Assembly: GCF_006345805.1 (NCBI RefSeq)
Contig: NC_043005.1
Span: 66,774,001 to 66,838,000, forward strand
Length of the DNA stretch: 64,000 nt
Reading direction: 5' to 3'
Origin: Octopus sinensis
Lineage: Eukaryota
Below, in pieces: positions 4,427-36,057 of this stretch. The notes under the pieces are model-generated. The model made no database searches. It was not told where the DNA came from and saw only the letters and a program-made list of their open reading frames with translations. The position numbers were made by a program, and so were the translations under genes. Within the stretch, counting starts at the first letter, position 1. Each line of letters opens with the position of its first letter.

Positions 4427-5680
4427 GTTGGACAAAATAATGGAAACACCTAGCATCATACCAATTTATAATTCTGAAATATCTATAGAACCGTGAAAAG
4501 CTTGTTTATTGCTATGTTTTTATATTTATTATTAGTGTTGATTAATATGCCTAGCTAAAATTACTGTTTCTTTTCAGATATCATCAGAAAAATGTATTTA
4601 AAATTCATTAACATGACAGATCTATCGGGTTTTCAAAGAAGTCAAATTGTTGCTGTACGTATGGTAGTCGCTAGCGTAACGAAAATAGCCGAAATGTTTG
4701 GTGTATCAAGAATTACTGTCTGGAAAGTAATGACAGCCTTTGAGAAGGAGGGCAAAAACCTCCTCGTCAAAACAAAAGTCCGGAAGAAATCCAAAACATT
4801 CAGATAGAGACCGTCGGACTCTTGCGTGAATAATTAGAGAGCTTCAAAAAAGTACAGCTCCCAAAATTACTGCAGAGCTCAATGACCAGCTCGAGAACCC
4901 AGTTTCCACCAAATCTGTTCTCCGGGAGCTGTACAAAGCTGGATTTCATGAGTGCGCTGCGATCAGAAAGCCACTAATTTCAAAAACAAACGTTGCAAAG
5001 CATTGAGAGAGGATTAAAAACCTACATCATTGGTCACTAGAACAGTGGAAGAATGTTATTTTCTTGGGCGAGTCATCGTTTACCTTATTTCCGACCACCG
5101 ACCGAATACACGTGCGGAGACAGCCAAAAGAAGCATTTGAGCCGGACTGCCTTCTTCCAACTGTTAAAAATGGAGGAGGATCTGTGATGATCGGCGATGG
5201 GGTTAATTCTTGGAAATCATCCGGCCCAATGGTTTCCCTTCATGGCATAGTTAAGAGTCACGACTATTTAAGTATTTTATCTGATCAAATTCATTCTATG
5301 TTTGCGGAACTCTTTCCAGAAGGAAACGCAATCTTTCAGGATGATAATGTACTAATTCACACAGCTAAAGTTGTTACTGAATGGCACGAGGAACATTCTA
5401 GGGAAGTTGAATATCTTACCAGGCCACCACAGTCTCCAGAGTTCAATATTATTGAACATTTATGTAAGGAGTCGATATCCTCCTCCATCATCACTTCAAG
5501 AACTGCAAAGTGTTTTAGCTAAAGAATGGACAAAAATTCCTTAGGAAAAAATTCAAACTTTGTACGAGTCCATACCTCGTAGAATTCATATTTTAATTAC
5601 TGCCAAAGGCGGTCCTATCCCGTTTTAAAATAATTTTGTTTGAAATTTTAAGGTGTTACCATTATTTTGTCCAACCCCTG
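4422..5680 (+). mobile_element. Tc1-family (DD34E-type) DNA transposon, near full length, transposase disrupted
   Basis: 29-bp TIRs at 4422-4450 (tagtggttggacaaaataatggaaacacc) and 5652-5680, inserted in TA. HTH fragment at 4592-4807 (LSGFQRSQIV...IAEMFGVSR) and catalytic fragment at 5064-5522 (ESSF...TVKNGGGSVMI...FQDDN...PPQSPEFNIIEHL). Confidence 0.92.
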
Positions 5681-7000: not shown

Positions 7001-8755
7001 ATGTGAATGACCTTATATATTCCGCAGCCTCCATCGCTGTAAAAGCTTTCAGAGTTAAAAGTCAACGAAGAACGAAGGACAATGTTTCATGAGAACCAAA
7101 TTAACAGCTCAAAAGAGATTGTGGACGGATAAATGCAATCATAGAAAAGAAGAAAATGAAGGAAAGACGCAGGAAATGCAACATAAAACAAAAGACCTGC
7201 AAGTTGTTAAAGAAGGGTTGTGACAAAAATCCAAACAGTGACGGGTTAAAAAGAACAAAAAATAGTGTCAACAAAGATCAAAGCAGTACGAGCAGAATAA
7301 ACTCGTCGAGCACAATGAATGGAAATTCTATGACCAACTGAAGAATGAAAAACATCAAGAAATTTCTGGGAAAAAAATCGAGAGCCAAAAGTCCAATATA
7401 ATATATAAGCAGACTGTTTACGGGAATTTGTCTGATGTTGTAAAATTACTACAAGACATCATCATTACATCACTGTGGAATAACGACGGGTACAGACATG
7501 TAGAACTGCTGCAAGACGAGAGCATAATGGAAGGCGAAATAAGACAGAACGTCACTAAGGAGTAAAAGAAGAGAATTAGAAAAGTGATTGAAACAAAACT
7601 TAATTGAAGGAACATAATAAATCTCATAAACGCATAGGCTAATCAGGTATTGAGATATTCTGCTCCCTTTCTGAAAGATCGAGATGCAGAATTTGGATAG
7701 AAGAACTAGAAAATTACTCACAAAGCACAACGCACGCCATCCTAAAAGCAACACTGACCAATTCTATCTACCAAGAAAGGAAGGTGGTAGAGAAATACTA
7801 AACGCAGAATACACTGCTAGTACTTCGATACTGGGTCTTCACAATTAAGCTTTGCACTGGACAATATCAGCAGCCAGATGCACTTTATACGTGACTGAAA
7901 TTGTAGACGAAATCGCAGAGAAAAGAAAGAAAAACAGAATAAATAAATGTAATGAAATGGAACCGCATGACCAATTCATGCAGCAAAACAAAAATGGAGG
8001 AAGTAATCATCGCTGGCTTTGGTTGACGGACGGGGGCTTGAAACGAGGGGCAAAATCGCAAATTATAGCCGCTCAGAAAGAAGCCCTTAGAACGAATCTG
8101 ATAAAGGCAAAGTTCGAGAAAATTCGGTCAGGCAGCAATTGTAGAATCTGCAGAAAAGGAGACGAGAGTATCAATCACATTTTGAGTGGGTGCGGCATAT
8201 TAGCACAAAAGGTGTATAAGTGCAGACATGGCTGTGCTGGCGAAACAGTGCATTGGGATGTTAGCTGAGTGTGAGGCCTGAAAGCAACAGAAATGTGGTG
8301 TGATCACGAAACTAGGGTTTGGGTTAGGGTTAGGGTGAGAGAAAATGAGAATTACAACTTGTGGAATTGATCACAATACTGAGGCAAGAAAACTAGACAT
8401 GGTTATAGAGGACAAAATAAACAGTCTAAGATCATAGATTTTGCAATTACCTATCACAGCAAATTCGATACCAAAGAAATTGTAAAAATATTGAGAAATA
8501 TCAGGATTTAGACAGAGAGCTGAGGAGACTGTGAGAAAACGACAGCAATTATCCCTGTAATAATTGACACGCTCGGCACAACATACAAAAGGCTTACCAA
8601 ATAACCGAAAAAAATTGGAATTGAAACTTGCATTGTCAACCTCCAGAAAAGTACCATCCTCTATTTCGCCAGATTCCTTTAAATGATTCTTGAGATTTGT
8701 GGAGACTTGTTATCGCCGTCAAACCTCAGGATAAAATACCTGCTAACTAAATTAG
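7001..8755 (+). mobile_element. R4/Dong-like non-LTR retrotransposon relic (RT C-terminal part, CCHC knuckle, REL endonuclease), internally deleted
   Basis: WLWLTDGGLK...IIAAQKEALRTN...CRICRKGDESINHILSGCGILAQKVYKCRH at 7852-8268, and FYLPRKEGGR near 7760. The 5' edge abuts (TAA)n(CAA)n. Confidence 0.85.
8312..8336 (+). repeat. Short interstitial telomere-like tract
   Basis: ctagggtttgggttagggttagggt. Confidence 0.7.
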
Positions 8756-29800: not shown

Positions 29801-30017
29801 TATACTAGCTGTAATGAAAGGATCTCAAAAGCTAGCTTATGTACATTCATACATGTATACATACATACCTATATACATTTACACATACACACACATATAT
29901 GTATACACACATACACATATACATACGTAAGTATGTATATATATATATATACATATATATATATAAATATGTATATATATTTATATATATACATATACAC
30001 ACACATATATATACATA

Positions 30018-30062
<45 letters not shown>

Positions 30063-30205
30063 ATACATGTGTGAACCTGTGGGTGCGTGTTGGAACTAAA
30101 ATTCATTTATGTATGAGTGTATTTCTCCCAACAACAAACGTTTTCAGTCATGTGTTACACTAATATAATAGGCAAAATACGAGACACGATGTTTAGAACT
30201 GAAAC

Positions 30206-30264
<59 letters not shown>

Positions 30265-30271
30265 TATATAC

Positions 30272-30324
<53 letters not shown>

Positions 30325-30692
30325 TATATATATGTGCATATATGTACGTATATATATAATTGTGTGTATATATATATATATACAATATTTATTGTATCCT
30401 ATATAATTAAGTAAACCAACAAAAATTACAACAATATATTAATATCAACTGTCATAATTATATTTATTCATACGTTAAAGTGACGGTGATACAAATGAAA
30501 AGTAATTATTCTAGCCTGAATAGCCTCATTTCATATAGATCAAGAGATCTATATGAAATGATGCAAAATGAAATACCTTTTGAATCCTAACAATCTTTTC
30601 AATAGATGTTCAACTGATATAATGAGGACATCGATCATCAGTAACAAAATGGTATTATTATTATTATTATTATTATTTTGTTTTTGTTTTGT

Positions 30693-30904
30693 TTTTCCAG
30701 TTTCAGCTCTTGAGCTGTGGCCATGCTGGGGCACCGCCATTGTGGTGAAAGAGTACAGCAGGGATCACCACCCCCTGCCGGAGCCTCGTAGAGCTTTTAG
30801 GTGTTTTCGCTCAATAAACACACACAACGCCCGGTCTGAGAATCGAAACCGCGATCCTGCGACCGCGAGTCCGCTGCCCTAACCACTAGGCCATTGCGCC
30901 TCTA
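30693..30904 (-). mobile_element. tRNA(Arg)-like-derived SINE (family C) joined to a family A head (30905-30973)
   Basis: Minus strand gaggcgcaatggcctagtggttagggcagcggactcgcggtcgcaggatcgcggtttcgattctc has A box, TCG anticodon-like loop and B box. The tail is cccagcatggccacagctc. Confidence 0.85.
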
Positions 30905-31019
30905 CGTAAAGACAGACGAAATATCGCAAAGCATTTCGCCCAGCGTGCTAACGTTTCTGCCAGCTTGCCGCCTTATTTATTATTATTATTATAATTATAA
31001 TTATTATTATTATTATCAA

Positions 31020-31090
<71 letters not shown>

Positions 31091-31327
31091 TATTATTATC
31101 ATCATCATTATTATTATTGTTTGACACTGAACTACAATGGCGGCTATTGTCACGTTATCTATGTGGAGGATTTTGTAAATTCTCATTTTCTAGAGTATTG
31201 AAAGTACTCCTCGTGACATAGCTATAAAACTTACTACTGGCATATATGCACATTTGTTACTTCCGTGCACTTCTGTTATGTAATTTGAATAATTATTTCC
31301 AAGGTATCTGTACGCATACATTTATTC

Positions 31328-31388
<61 letters not shown>

Positions 31389-31536
31389 ATGTATATATAT
31401 GTATGTATGTATATATGCATAGATATATGTATATACATATAAATAGATATAGATAAGATACATATATATATATATGTGTATATATATATATGTACACACA
31501 CATATGCATATACATACATGCATATATATATATATT

Positions 31537-31599
<63 letters not shown>

Positions 31600-31912
31600 C
31601 TTACGTATCTAGATATCTAATTTGAAAAAATAAATTTCTGTCAATTTCTGCATCAAAAACATATTCTATTTGGATAAATTCTTTAACTGATATCGGAGAA
31701 GATTATTAGTTTTTTATAAAGTGAATCCCTAGTCAAGAGGTTCTCTCTTTACTAGATATCCACGCTAAATAAGTCTTGCCGATTAGCTGTGATCACACTC
31801 TCTCTGTAAATTATTGTCATTTTATGATCTGACAAATTTGCTGATTTGTGTACCATCCAGCTTTTCCGGCAGCTATTTAGCTATTTCGTTATTGTTATTG
31901 TTGTTGTTGTTG

Positions 31913-31959
<47 letters not shown>

Positions 31960-32899: not shown

Positions 32900-33450
32900 G
32901 TATATATTATTTATCAGTACCTATGTATATATATATATATATCCGTATATGCAAATATATATTAATATATAAATATATCCATGTATACATATATACATAT
33001 ACATGCATATATATATATATATATATATATACACACTTATATATACATACATATATGTATATATATATATTATATATATATATATATATATGTATATTAT
33101 ATATATATATATTATATATATATATAATATATATATGCATATATGTATGTATTATATGCATGTATGTCTGTGTCTCTGTGTCTGTGTGTACATATATATG
33201 TATGCATGTATATGTTTTTGTATGCATTTTCAAATCTGCGCGTATGAAATATATCAACATACACAGGATATATGTAAATAATGTTTGAACTTCCGTACAT
33301 ATGTACATATACGATTGTCTAACTGTGTATATTAATACATATTCTCGTAGCCCTCTATCTATTCATCTATCCATATATCGGTCTATCTATTTGTCTTTAT
33401 ACACGTCCATATATATGTGTGTGTATATATATATATATGTATATACATAT

Positions 33451-33488
<38 letters not shown>

Positions 33489-33670
33489 TTATATATACAT
33501 ACATATATGTATATATATGTATAATATATATATATATATATATATAATATATATATAGTTATATATATATATACATATATATATAGATTTAGATATATAC
33601 ATATATACACGCATATGTACATATATATATATATATATGTATATGTATATGTATATGTATATATATGTAT

Positions 33671-33720
<50 letters not shown>

Positions 33721-33950
33721 TATACATATATATTCATGCATACTTATAAATATGTGTGTATATATTTTCGTATTCATTTATTTTTGCATATTTACTTATG
33801 TATATATATACATAGTATATATATATATATATATATATTTACATACATATATATATATATTATATATATATATATACAAACATATATATATATACATATT
33901 TATACATACATATATACATCGATATGCATACCTGCATTCATATGTATACA
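32900..33950. repeat. ~1-kb degenerate (TA)n field directly downstream of the toxin-like stop codon
   Basis: Read directly. Confidence 0.95.
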
Positions 33951-34051: not shown

Positions 34052-35401
34052 TCACACACTGGTTACTTTGGCTAAGCTGGTTGGACTTTCGATACTCCTT
34101 CTGGCCGCAGTTCCCGTCTCAACAGAGCGCGTTTGTCGTAATGGACCAATTGGTAGTTCGGAAGTCTTTAAAGCCACAGGTACACTCTGACGCCTGGACA
34201 GCGAGTGTGGAGGCATAGATTTCTCCATCGGGGACAGTTGCTTTTCTCCTCCCTTCAACATCCCTGGTGGCTGTTCTTCAGCCATTTCGGTAATTATTGT
34301 AGGAATATTTGGAAAACGCATATCTTTGGTTTCGGATATCTCAGATTTTTCCGATTTTTCTGACTTCTCTTCTTCTTGCGGTGTATGTGGAACGAGATTC
34401 GCATCCATAGACCTCGTCGCGTGTCTGACTACTTGCGAGCAAACCTCCTTTGTTTCGATGGGAATTACAGATTCCTTCGACTCAAGTGAGGTAGACTGCG
34501 TCTGCTTCATATGCTCCCTCGCACTATCCAACTTCGCGTCGTGGTCTATGGGGTGGGACTCGAGCAGTATTCTTTGATTTCGCCAACGGATACTTTGCAA
34601 TATGCCAATAGTTGTAATTTCTATATGGTACGTTATTTTACGGTCACCCGCCGTAACTTCAATAATGGATACGTTACAATCAGCGAATACATCACTGAGA
34701 TCTGTAATCATAACTATTCCTTGAATTTCCATATCTTTCTTTCGTCTTATGGTTACTGGAGCTTCCCCCGACGGCATTCGAAGTGTTGAGCGTACTTCAA
34801 AGTCTGCAACCATTTCATCTTCTGTTAACATAATTTTTGCTTCTGTTAGATAGTTTGGTTCGACCACAACGTCACTATCTGTCTCCCAGATATAAGTCTC
34901 TTCAATTGTTTCGCCAGGAGGTCTGGTTACGGTCAACTGACCGCTTAAACCAGCACTAACACCGCAATCAGAATATTTTTCTGGAAGCTGAAGTTTCAGA
35001 TAGAGATTGGTGCAACAACCAACCATATAACCACGCTGACAAGTAATTGTAGTCGTTGCTTTGGTATGTCTTTGTGTCTTCAACTTATAAGATTGCTCTT
35101 TCTGTGTGTTGTTTCTAAAGTTGGTCGAAAAAAGAACCACCTGTTTCTGCTCTCGAAGGCCACTGGCCAGCTTCGAACGGGGAGTGAACTTGACCGTACG
35201 ATGATAAATTTCGAAGAAACTCCATGGTATGTCAATGATGAAATCGCTCCGGCGGACAAAGATACCTTGGATGCAACACACATCCCGGGTGAACTCTTTC
35301 CAGACGTAGTCCTGAATAAGTTTCTGGATGTCAATGACAGGGCCATAGTCGACCGCCGGGTCAGATCGTTTCCTTCTTGGACATAGCATGCCTATTTTCA
35401 T
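34052..35401 (-). CDS. Aerolysin-like beta-pore-forming protein (ETX/MTX2 fold, LIN-24-like), 449 aa, single coding exon, with ~164-aa low-complexity C-terminal tail
   Basis: The only long non-repetitive ORF. In-frame TAA at 35462-35464 makes ATG 35401 (MKIGMLCPRRKRS) the first Met; the track's GTG start at 35452 is not needed. Motifs typical of the family: VVLFSTNFRNNTQKEQSYKLKTQRHTKATTTIT, an alternating amphipathic hairpin (NLYLKLQLP...GVSAGLSGQLTVT), then ETIEETYIWETDSDVVVEP and AKIMLTEDEMVADFEV. Family assigned by motif recognition, not by HMM search. Confidence 0.8.
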   Translation of the reverse strand: MKIGMLCPRRKRSDPAVDYGPVIDIQKLIQDYVWKEFTRDVCCIQGIFVRRSDFIIDIPWSFFEIYHRTVKFTPRSKLASGLREQKQVVLFSTNFRNNTQKEQSYKLKTQRHTKATTTITCQRGYMVGCCTNLYLKLQLPEKYSDCGVSAGLSGQLTVTRPPGETIEETYIWETDSDVVVEPNYLTEAKIMLTEDEMVADFEVRSTLRMPSGEAPVTIRRKKDMEIQGIVMITDLSDVFADCNVSIIEVTAGDRKITYHIEITTIGILQSIRWRNQRILLESHPIDHDAKLDSAREHMKQTQSTSLESKESVIPIETKEVCSQVVRHATRSMDANLVPHTPQEEEKSEKSEKSEISETKDMRFPNIPTIITEMAEEQPPGMLKGGEKQLSPMEKSMPPHSLSRRQSVPVALKTSELPIGPLRQTRSVETGTAARRSIESPTSLAKVTSV

Positions 35402-35526
35402 TGACTCAACTAAGGAAGAGACTGTGAAATGATACTTAATCGGAAGCAACACAATGGCGGTTTACGAGTGAGGTCATGCGACTTTCAGATACTTATAACG
35501 ATTTACCACTGAGCCATAAGCAGCAC

Positions 35527-35580
35527 CTGAAATATACAAGAAAAAAGAAAACAAAGATAAGTCAACGTAGGAAAATTAGT
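35527..35580 (-). promoter_or_regulatory. 3' splice acceptor (branch point, polypyrimidine tract, AG) upstream of the toxin-like CDS
   Basis: Minus strand reads actaat...ttgacttatctttgttttcttttttcttgtatatttcag|GTGCTG. The exon would start at 35526 with 125 nt of leader before ATG 35401. Confidence 0.7.
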
Positions 35581-36057
35581 GATTGAAATATAAATATTCA
35601 ATTTAAATAGCAATCAATAACAGAATAATCAAGTGGTAGAAAATGACCATAAACTAATACATCAAGCATAAATACGATTTACCGTTTTATTGATATCAAA
35701 TTCATTGAACACGTATTATATATGTGTGTGTGTGTGTGAATGTAAATACACACAGAAATACGCACGCACACACACATACACAGACACTCATACACACACG
35801 CGCACGCACACACATATACAAAATAGTATACCTGTACATAGATATCTTTATTTGTATGCGTGAGTCTCGGTGTGCGCGTCTGTAGTGAAACACACTGTTT
35901 CTTTCTCTCTTTTCCTGTCTGTTTTTCTATCTGTCTGTCTTTCTCTCTCTCTCTCTACCACTTCACGACTATATTTTGAGTACCTTTTGATACAGCTAAA
36001 TTGTTGTCAATCAATGACGGGGGCAATAATGATGGAAAGCGTTTTTAGTATTCATGG

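Follow-up and report, generated by a model that had tools for sequence, protein, structure and literature searches.

The stretch of Octopus sinensis DNA analysed here (64,000 nucleotides of contig NC_043005.1, positions 66,774,001 to 66,838,000 of the forward strand in assembly GCF_006345805.1; hereafter the window, in whose own coordinates all positions are given) carries a gene for a protein composed of an aerolysin-type, ETX/MTX2-like domain and a long tail. Its coding sequence (CDS) is an open reading frame (ORF) of 449 codons on the minus strand, which runs uninterrupted from an ATG at 35401 to a TGA at 34052-34054; a 466-residue listing of the same ORF starts instead at an upstream GTG. 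This is by a wide margin the longest ORF of the window, with no competitor near it, and the next-longest ones are translations of TA/TG microsatellites or transposon relics. At the base composition of the window, 449 stop-free codons would arise by chance with a probability of 2.8e-16 per position, or 3.6e-11 over both strands. The ORF also has a higher proportion of guanine plus cytosine (GC) than the DNA around it (44.6% versus about 33%). The protein is encoded residue for residue by a called gene on OX597823.1, a 118-Mb chromosome scaffold of the Octopus vulgaris reference assembly (GCA_951406725.2), and it is 99% identical to Octopus bimaculoides XP_014769338.1, which is annotated as "uncharacterized protein LOC106868423 isoform X2". 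The ORF, described as intact in a preliminary description made from the letters of the window, is a real, intact octopus gene. The gene and the elements of its product are arranged as follows.

34052..35401, minus strand: complete CDS, 449 codons plus TGA, in a single coding exon
35363..35401, minus strand: N-terminal motif MKIGMLCPRRKRS, residues 1-13, with M-x-x-x-M-L-C followed by a basic cluster; candidate S-acylation or membrane-tethering site
34532..35344, minus strand: aerolysin-family (ETX/MTX2-type) beta-rich domain, residues ~20-290, predicted from an AlphaFold model, Foldseek, Pfam and profile search
34922..35029, minus strand: candidate membrane-insertion (pre-stem) hairpin, residues 125-160, with two arms of alternating hydrophobic and polar residues around a P-x-x-x-x-x-C-G turn
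34856..34888, minus strand: WETDSDVVVEP motif, residues 172-182, within the stretch that aligns to PF03318
34055..34531, minus strand: predicted disordered tail, residues 291-449, rich in Ser, Glu, Lys and Pro and containing a (KSE)3 run
34415..34465, minus strand: tail island 1, IPIETKEVCSQVVRHAT, residues 313-329
34286..34327, minus strand: tail island 2, KDMRFPNIPTIITE, residues 359-372
34055..34069, minus strand: KVTSV-COOH at the C-terminus, residues 445-449, in agreement with the class I PDZ-ligand pattern x-[S/T]-x-hydrophobic

Relatives of the protein were collected with HMMER from 1.84 billion representative proteins; the search was exhaustive and returned 261 sequences, 97 of them at an expect value (E) of 1e-10 or below. 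A word-indexed homologue search recovered only four to five proteins, even with a 51-sequence profile, and the family was hence taken from the HMMER search. Used alone, the octopus protein matches the ETX_MTX2 family of Pfam (PF03318) at E 0.002 and 18.5 bits, under the cut-off of 22, and as a single query against PDB sequences it finds nothing significant, the best match (VioE, E 0.37) being noise. At the level of the family the Pfam result is positive: an orthologue, P0003, scores 32 bits, over the same cut-off, and PF03318 is matched by 33 of the 51 aligned relatives, at best with E 9.8e-12. The profile made from these 51 sequences finds Cry51Aa1 (1.2e-8), Cry23Aa1 (8e-8) and a natterin-like protein (4e-6) among PDB sequences, and it also matches the Laetiporus haemolytic lectin and SaroL-1 among solved structures. 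PF01117 (Aerolysin) is matched by just one of the 51 relatives, at E 0.0028.

Structure prediction leads to the same assignment. An AlphaFold2 model built from the family alignment has a predicted local distance difference test score (pLDDT) of about 90 over residues 20-290, and a second model, built from 18 orthologues, reproduces its strand order and topology. With the predicted structure as query, Foldseek returned 39 PDB matches at E < 1e-3, all 39 of them to the aerolysin family. The top matches are Cry23Aa1 (3.0e-14), Cry51Aa1 (8.3e-14) and the 26-kDa Bacillus thuringiensis (Bt) crystal protein 2d42 (template modelling score, or TM-score, of 0.60 on the target), followed further down by Sip, epsilon toxin, parasporin-2, aerolysin, Dln1, LSL, the lamprey immune protein and the Bombina aerolysin-like protein; the alignments to Cry23Aa1, 2d42 and epsilon toxin are full-length, at about 280 columns. 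The match to the lysenin pore is insignificant (E above 5e-3, low probability), and a Pfam scan of the octopus protein found no accessory lectin or other targeting domain. The aerolysin-type ETX/MTX2 fold proposed in the preliminary description is thus almost certainly correct, and the protein falls outside the aerolysin-proper, natterin, biomphalysin and lysenin branches of the superfamily.

Smaller features of the domain can be compared across the same set of relatives. Column by column in the 51 sequences, hydropathy alternates strictly at residues 125-139 and 148-158, so that the alternating pre-stem hairpin first noticed in the octopus sequence proves to be a property of the family. The pLDDT of the hairpin, 67-83, is the lowest in the domain, as expected of a mobile segment. 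In its first arm both octopods compared here, O. sinensis and a second species represented by contig L001 of Logan run SRR25158137, have a two-residue LY insertion and a Cys-Cys pair (residues 129-134, approximately 35000-35017 on the minus strand), which are absent from all other relatives. The Thr/Ser-rich beta strands that had been described are also present, in the form of HTKATTTITCQ. The W..D..V.V.P motif occurs as WETDSDVVVEP and has stood up in all but its last position: W172 is found in 39 and V180 in 50 of the 51 family members and D175 is likewise conserved, but residue 182 is proline in only 18 of the 51.

The sequence MKIGMLCPRRKRSDP at the N-terminus contains no signal peptide. 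Among the 149 relatives that begin with methionine, which made up the N-terminus survey, a signal-peptide-like start (a hydrophobic nine-residue stretch within the first 30 residues) occurs in only three, and the octopus protein is not one of them. A cysteine within residues 2-12 is present in 61 of the 149, against 17.7% expected from composition, and at least two cysteines in 31; typical relatives start with MLCGC, MLCSC, MGCC, MACC or MFGCC. The family form of the octopus motif is M-x-x-x-M-L-C(-x-C), in which Cys7 is at least 90% conserved among the 18 closest orthologues, and the upstream in-frame methionine that creates M-x-x-x-M-L-C is also found in contigs of four other species (L001, L005, L006 and L007). 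A methionine, a hydrophobic residue and Cys(-x-Cys), followed by basic residues, resembles the S-palmitoylation motifs of cytosolic neuronal proteins. The likeness to the N-terminal Cys motifs of GAP-43 and PSD-95 in this short segment, and to the C-terminus of CRIPT in the x-[S/T]-x-V end, is an analogy in short motifs only and implies no homology. After Cys7 the octopus protein reads RRKRS (residues 9-13, 35363-35377 on the minus strand), and the second octopod RGKRS; this segment is octopod-specific, matches both a dibasic processing pattern and a basophilic-kinase pattern and could, on the strength of these patterns, act as an electrostatic or phospho-switch of membrane binding.

At the other end of the protein, residues 291-449 have pLDDT below 50 in both models. 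Within this tail, island 1 (IP...KE..S....HAT) has seven positions, I313, P314, K318, S322, H327, A328 and T329, that are invariant in the five closest sequences; it is found in the cephalopod, chiton and bivalve orthologues and is unrecognisable in the gastropod ones. Island 2 (RFP.IPTIITE) contains Pro367, invariant in 18 orthologues, and its IPTIITE segment is shared by octopus, chiton, bivalves and limpets. The C-terminus of the family has the form -(S/A)K(V/M)TSV, with -TTV in snails, and octopus, chiton, bivalves and limpets all retain the -KVTSV end. A sequence x-[S/T]-x-V at the free end of the chain is what characterises class I PDZ ligands. Ends in -TSV or -TTV occur in 11 of the 149 Met-starting relatives, all of them in the long-tail subfamily, and they also close 15 of the 18 rows in the alignment of orthologues. 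In the second octopod the final residues are -VTKL, likewise within the class I pattern. Docking of the tail on the domain, considered because of a weak C-terminal strand in the first model, is not supported: the second, orthologue-only model does not reproduce that strand and leaves the tail wholly disordered.

Splice-site candidates lie close to both ends of the coding exon.

34058..34060, minus strand: candidate alternative 5′ splice site in codon 448 (A/GTGTGTGA), proposed from protein comparison only
35421..35423, minus strand: likely 3′ splice acceptor (tttcacAG/T), 20 nucleotides upstream of the ATG
35527-35528, minus strand: alternative candidate acceptor AG, after a long pyrimidine tract

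The candidate site in codon 448 comes from O. bimaculoides isoform X2 (P0001), which is identical to the octopus protein through Ser448 and then continues with ...SHHSFSIVQNINS in place of V-stop. This isoform loses only the terminal valine of the -TSV end and gains 13 other residues; an exon for its tail has no match in the six frames of the 64-kb window. Judging from the two protein ends, alternative splicing may toggle the PDZ-type C-terminus. Upstream of the ATG, the contig of the second octopod has a matching ...ttttcAG/CCTCTACCTT... at a distance of 27 nucleotides, followed by a similar CTCT(T/A)CCTT, and Patella has ttttcag about 55 nucleotides from its start codon.

Orthologues with the same architecture are found in the chiton Liolophura sinensis, the freshwater mussels Potamilus and Sinanodonta, the limpets Patella vulgata and P. 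caerulea, the whelk Babylonia and the land snail Candidula, and all are annotated as "uncharacterized" or "hypothetical". Patella vulgata and Potamilus streckersoni likewise have the CDS in one exon, the gene range being equal to the CDS length, and in Sinanodonta woodiana the long-tail orthologue is represented by two nearby loci (P0154 and P0155). Shorter relatives of about 300 residues, which are tailless and mostly without the N-terminal Cys, occur in bivalves, the chiton, Lottia and Biomphalaria; a Biomphalaria paralogue spans 9 kb for 320 residues and must therefore have introns. More distant relatives come from the annelid Capitella, the nemertean Lineus and the nematode Trichinella (E 3e-11). 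In a rough neighbour-joining tree, the proteins with a long tail, an N-terminal Cys and a -T-x-V end cluster together and are separated from the short paralogues that these species also have, a topology implying that a duplication preceded the radiation of the molluscs. As far as these sequences can tell, the gene is ancient and mollusc-wide rather than cephalopod-specific; the orthologue conservation on which the preliminary description had made its case depend is present across chitons, bivalves, limpets and snails, and its term "cephalopod" effector proved too narrow for what is the octopus orthologue of a mollusc-wide gene.

Two observations concern the outer parts of the family. In Trichinella, P0095 and the members of its cluster carry the ETX/MTX2-like domain at the C-terminus (residues 877-1146) of ERCC-6/RAD54-like gene models, an architecture that is probably an annotation fusion of neighbouring genes. 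Physella acuta has four distant paralogues with extra N-terminal regions (P0059, P0111, P0139 and P0147; LOC131952918, LOC131952919, LOC131952926 and LOC131952940), most likely all on one contig of 502,087 bp, which would amount to a local expansion of the short branch.

Selection on the gene was assessed by comparing positions 34052-35409 of the window with the single contig L001. The two proteins are 87% identical overall, and in the domain the identity is 97% for protein and only 76% for DNA. The proportion of nonsynonymous differences (pN) is 0.024 in the domain, 0.028 in the hairpin and 0.16 in the tail, while the corresponding synonymous proportion (pS) is about 0.8 (0.76-0.91) and saturated, third positions being identical in only 122 of 261 conserved codons. 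At this saturation the synonymous rate (dS) between the two octopods is not estimable, and the comparison gives only a bound on the ratio of nonsynonymous to synonymous rates (dN/dS) of the domain. In the hairpin pS reaches 0.91, with synonymous differences above random expectation, and GC at third codon positions (GC3) is 0.51 versus 0.43 between L001 and the window gene; codon usage has therefore shifted between the two octopods. At its end the contig has AATAAA and then poly(A), a hint that L001 is a transcript. Within the limits of this pairwise comparison, the domain is under very strong purifying selection, and it shows no arms-race signature of the kind left by the fast change customary in venom or immune effectors.

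The gene is flanked by repeats, and the following element lies next to it.

32922..33916, no strand assigned: (TA)n-rich microsatellite of about 1 kb, directly 3′ of the gene (Tandem Repeats Finder: period 2, 501 copies)

Together with this tract, (TTA)n, (TATATACA)n and (AC)n microsatellites nearby enclose the gene (29838-31958 and 35748-35814). Tandem repeats make up 14% of the window, rising to 20-25% in the 16-40 kb stretch that surrounds the gene, and to call these surroundings a repeat desert, as had been done, is fair. Scans of the 64-kb window for tRNAs and against Rfam were both without matches. A decayed Tc1/mariner-type DDE_3 transposase fragment at 5007-5519 on the plus strand passes the Pfam cut-off (E 1.1e-7), and at 7849-8265, also on the plus strand, there is a weak match to zf-RVT, the zinc-binding region of retroelement reverse transcriptases, that falls under it (E 2.7e-4). 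The description of the gene as the only real ORF in 64 kb accordingly holds for intact host genes but not for ORFs in general, given these decayed transposon remnants.

Comparison with known systems helps to place the octopus protein. Its best structural and profile matches are bacterial ETX/MTX2-type proteins (PF03318; Cry51Aa1, Cry23Aa1, parasporin-2 and the Clostridium perfringens epsilon toxin), with which it has in common an elongated three-part beta fold across the whole 270-residue domain, long strands rich in Ser and Thr, and an amphipathic hairpin. These bacterial proteins, however, are secreted or crystal toxins that act externally on the cells of other organisms, and their identity to the octopus protein is 11-15%; the octopus protein differs from them in its N-terminal Cys motif, its lack of a signal peptide and its 160-residue disordered tail, whose motifs are found in none of them. 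The biomphalysins, natterin-like proteins such as Dln1, BmALP1 of the Bombina beta-gamma-CAT complex, the lamprey immune protein and lysenin share the superfamily fold and are eukaryotic and host-encoded, and Foldseek matches Dln1, the lamprey protein and the Bombina protein to the octopus model at E 1e-6 to 1e-4. Unlike the octopus protein, which has no accessory domain and in whose family PF01117 is touched by a single relative, these animal defence proteins are extracellular, possess lectin, crystallin or other targeting domains and belong to the Aerolysin (PF01117) or lysenin branches.

A nearer parallel in concept is LIN-24 of Caenorhabditis elegans, an aerolysin-like protein of ETX/MTX2 type that the animal encodes and that works in its own cells, with roles in cell death (through gain-of-function alleles), starvation resistance and infection, and with localisation and pore activity still undefined (PMC12945463; PMC11860826). 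The likeness is one of concept, set by description, and orthology is not claimed; the nematode link of the octopus family is the Trichinella relative, the sole nematode seen. As the name of a concept, that of an endogenous animal ETX/MTX2 protein, the label "LIN-24-like" nevertheless seems reasonable.

The combination of these features is most simply accommodated by an endogenous, cytosol-side, lipid-anchored and tail-regulated aerolysin-type protein that acts on the membranes of its own cells, a reading to which we assign a probability of roughly 0.55. Synthesised in the cytosol, the protein would stay inside the cell, where an S-acylated N-terminal Cys would tether it to the cytosolic face of a membrane, assisted in octopus by the adjacent RRKR basic cluster. 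The motifs of the tail, the PDZ-ligand-like C-terminus among them, would position or restrain the protein, and the aerolysin module would then act on host membranes in a regulated manner, through oligomerisation and hairpin insertion or at least through membrane binding. Its role might thus be that of a physiological membrane-permeabilising or remodelling factor, as proposed for LIN-24, rather than that of an exported toxin. Several points weigh against this reading. The octopus protein on its own stays under the Pfam cut-off; its N-terminus carries a single Cys instead of the two found in most orthologues; isoform X2 of O. bimaculoides splices the terminal valine away; and the strand by which the tail might dock on the domain was not reproduced in the second model. 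Acylation of the N-terminal Cys and a PDZ-ligand function of the C-terminus are both pattern-based predictions, and pore formation by the octopus protein is predicted from its fold and patterns. In addition, several animal aerolysin-like proteins are released from cells although they have no signal peptide, one example being the Bombina complex, which has been described as secreted (PMC6370762; PMC7995273); the missing signal peptide is therefore no proof of an intracellular life.

The chief rivals concern where the protein acts and whether it forms pores. It might be a pore-forming effector of immunity, venom or skin defence that leaves the cell by non-classical export and acts on foreign cells, as the preliminary description had proposed. 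The fold and the insertion hairpin resemble those of cytolytic toxins, and the long C-terminal extension could be a pro-peptide removed at activation, a mode of activation usual in aerolysin and its relatives. Other animal aerolysin-like proteins have roles in defence, among them biomphalysin (PMC3605176) and natterin-like proteins (PMC8402412), and some are secreted in spite of lacking a signal peptide (PMC6370762). Such an effector would nonetheless have to be reconciled with a single fixed architecture across Mollusca, the sampled matches being free of the lineage-specific expansion typical of defence genes, and with 97% conservation of the domain between two octopods that differ to saturation at synonymous sites. 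The N-terminal Cys, the tail islands and the -TSV end are conserved motifs of a cytosolic type, no lectin or other targeting domain appears in the Pfam scan, and searches of the literature found neither a link of the gene to venom or immunity nor a report of the protein in any secretion. An effector in venom, immunity or cell killing is thus not supported by the present data, and we regard a released toxin as unlikely. About equally improbable is an aerolysin fold that forms no pore and serves as a membrane- or ligand-binding scaffold, an adaptor or a regulator of pore-forming paralogues. The fold does have non-toxic members, among them 2d42, the match with the best TM-score, which is itself a "non-toxic crystal protein". 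The tail, long, disordered and carrying linear motifs, is of a kind typical of adaptors; the octopod insertion and Cys-Cys pair in the hairpin point the same way, and a Bombina paralogue has been described as a negative regulator (PMC7995273). Against this, the amphipathic alternation of the hairpin is kept across 51 divergent relatives, which is hard to explain if the hairpin is unused, and its codons are as constrained as those of the rest of the domain (pN 0.028).

A wholly different explanation, that the ORF is a pseudogene, a recent retrocopy, a horizontally acquired fragment or an assembly contaminant, would account for an intronless CDS that lies isolated among repeats with GC above its surroundings, and animal aerolysin-like genes have been attributed to horizontal transfer (PMC8047071; PMC10629529). 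The frame is intact, however, and is located on a 118-Mb chromosome scaffold; the O. bimaculoides gene with which it shares 99% identity has predicted spliced isoforms; counterparts in limpet and mussel genomes are likewise single-exon; purifying selection is strong; and the distant Biomphalaria paralogue does have introns. Intact frame, chromosomal placement, orthologues and selection together effectively refute this explanation, whose probability we consider negligible.

Returning to the protein as an endogenous factor on the cytosolic side of membranes, a broader proposal can be put forward more tentatively: the octopus protein and its orthologues may constitute an undescribed, mollusc-wide class of aerolysin-type pore formers that are palmitoyl-anchored at the cytosolic membrane face, placed by PDZ scaffolds and switched or restrained by their tails. 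This is doubtful as it stands, and it goes further than the cytosol-side reading itself. Searches of the literature found no description of the gene, nor of an aerolysin-like protein that combines an acylation-type N-terminus with a PDZ-type end. The fold and its occurrence in animals are already known; what appears new, as read from the aligned proteins, is the conserved architecture and the cytosol-side life that it would imply.

If such a class exists, it would give invertebrates a beta-barrel equivalent of executioner or conductance proteins that work inside the cell, like the gasdermins, and its possible sites of action would include specialised membrane domains such as junctions or synapses. 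A caution follows for annotation, in that the fold alone is poor ground for calling a protein a venom or immune toxin. Aerolysin-type proteins are numerous in animals, yet almost none has a known physiological role, LIN-24 being the main genetic example (PMC12945463). The octopus gene adds a slow-evolving, single-copy-like case in which the pore module is joined to an apparent cytosolic lipid anchor and a tail of PDZ type, and it offers clear experimental handles in one Cys, one C-terminal valine and two tail motifs. Through these it may help to address the question of how a toxin fold is kept harmless in animals and put to use on the animals' own membranes.

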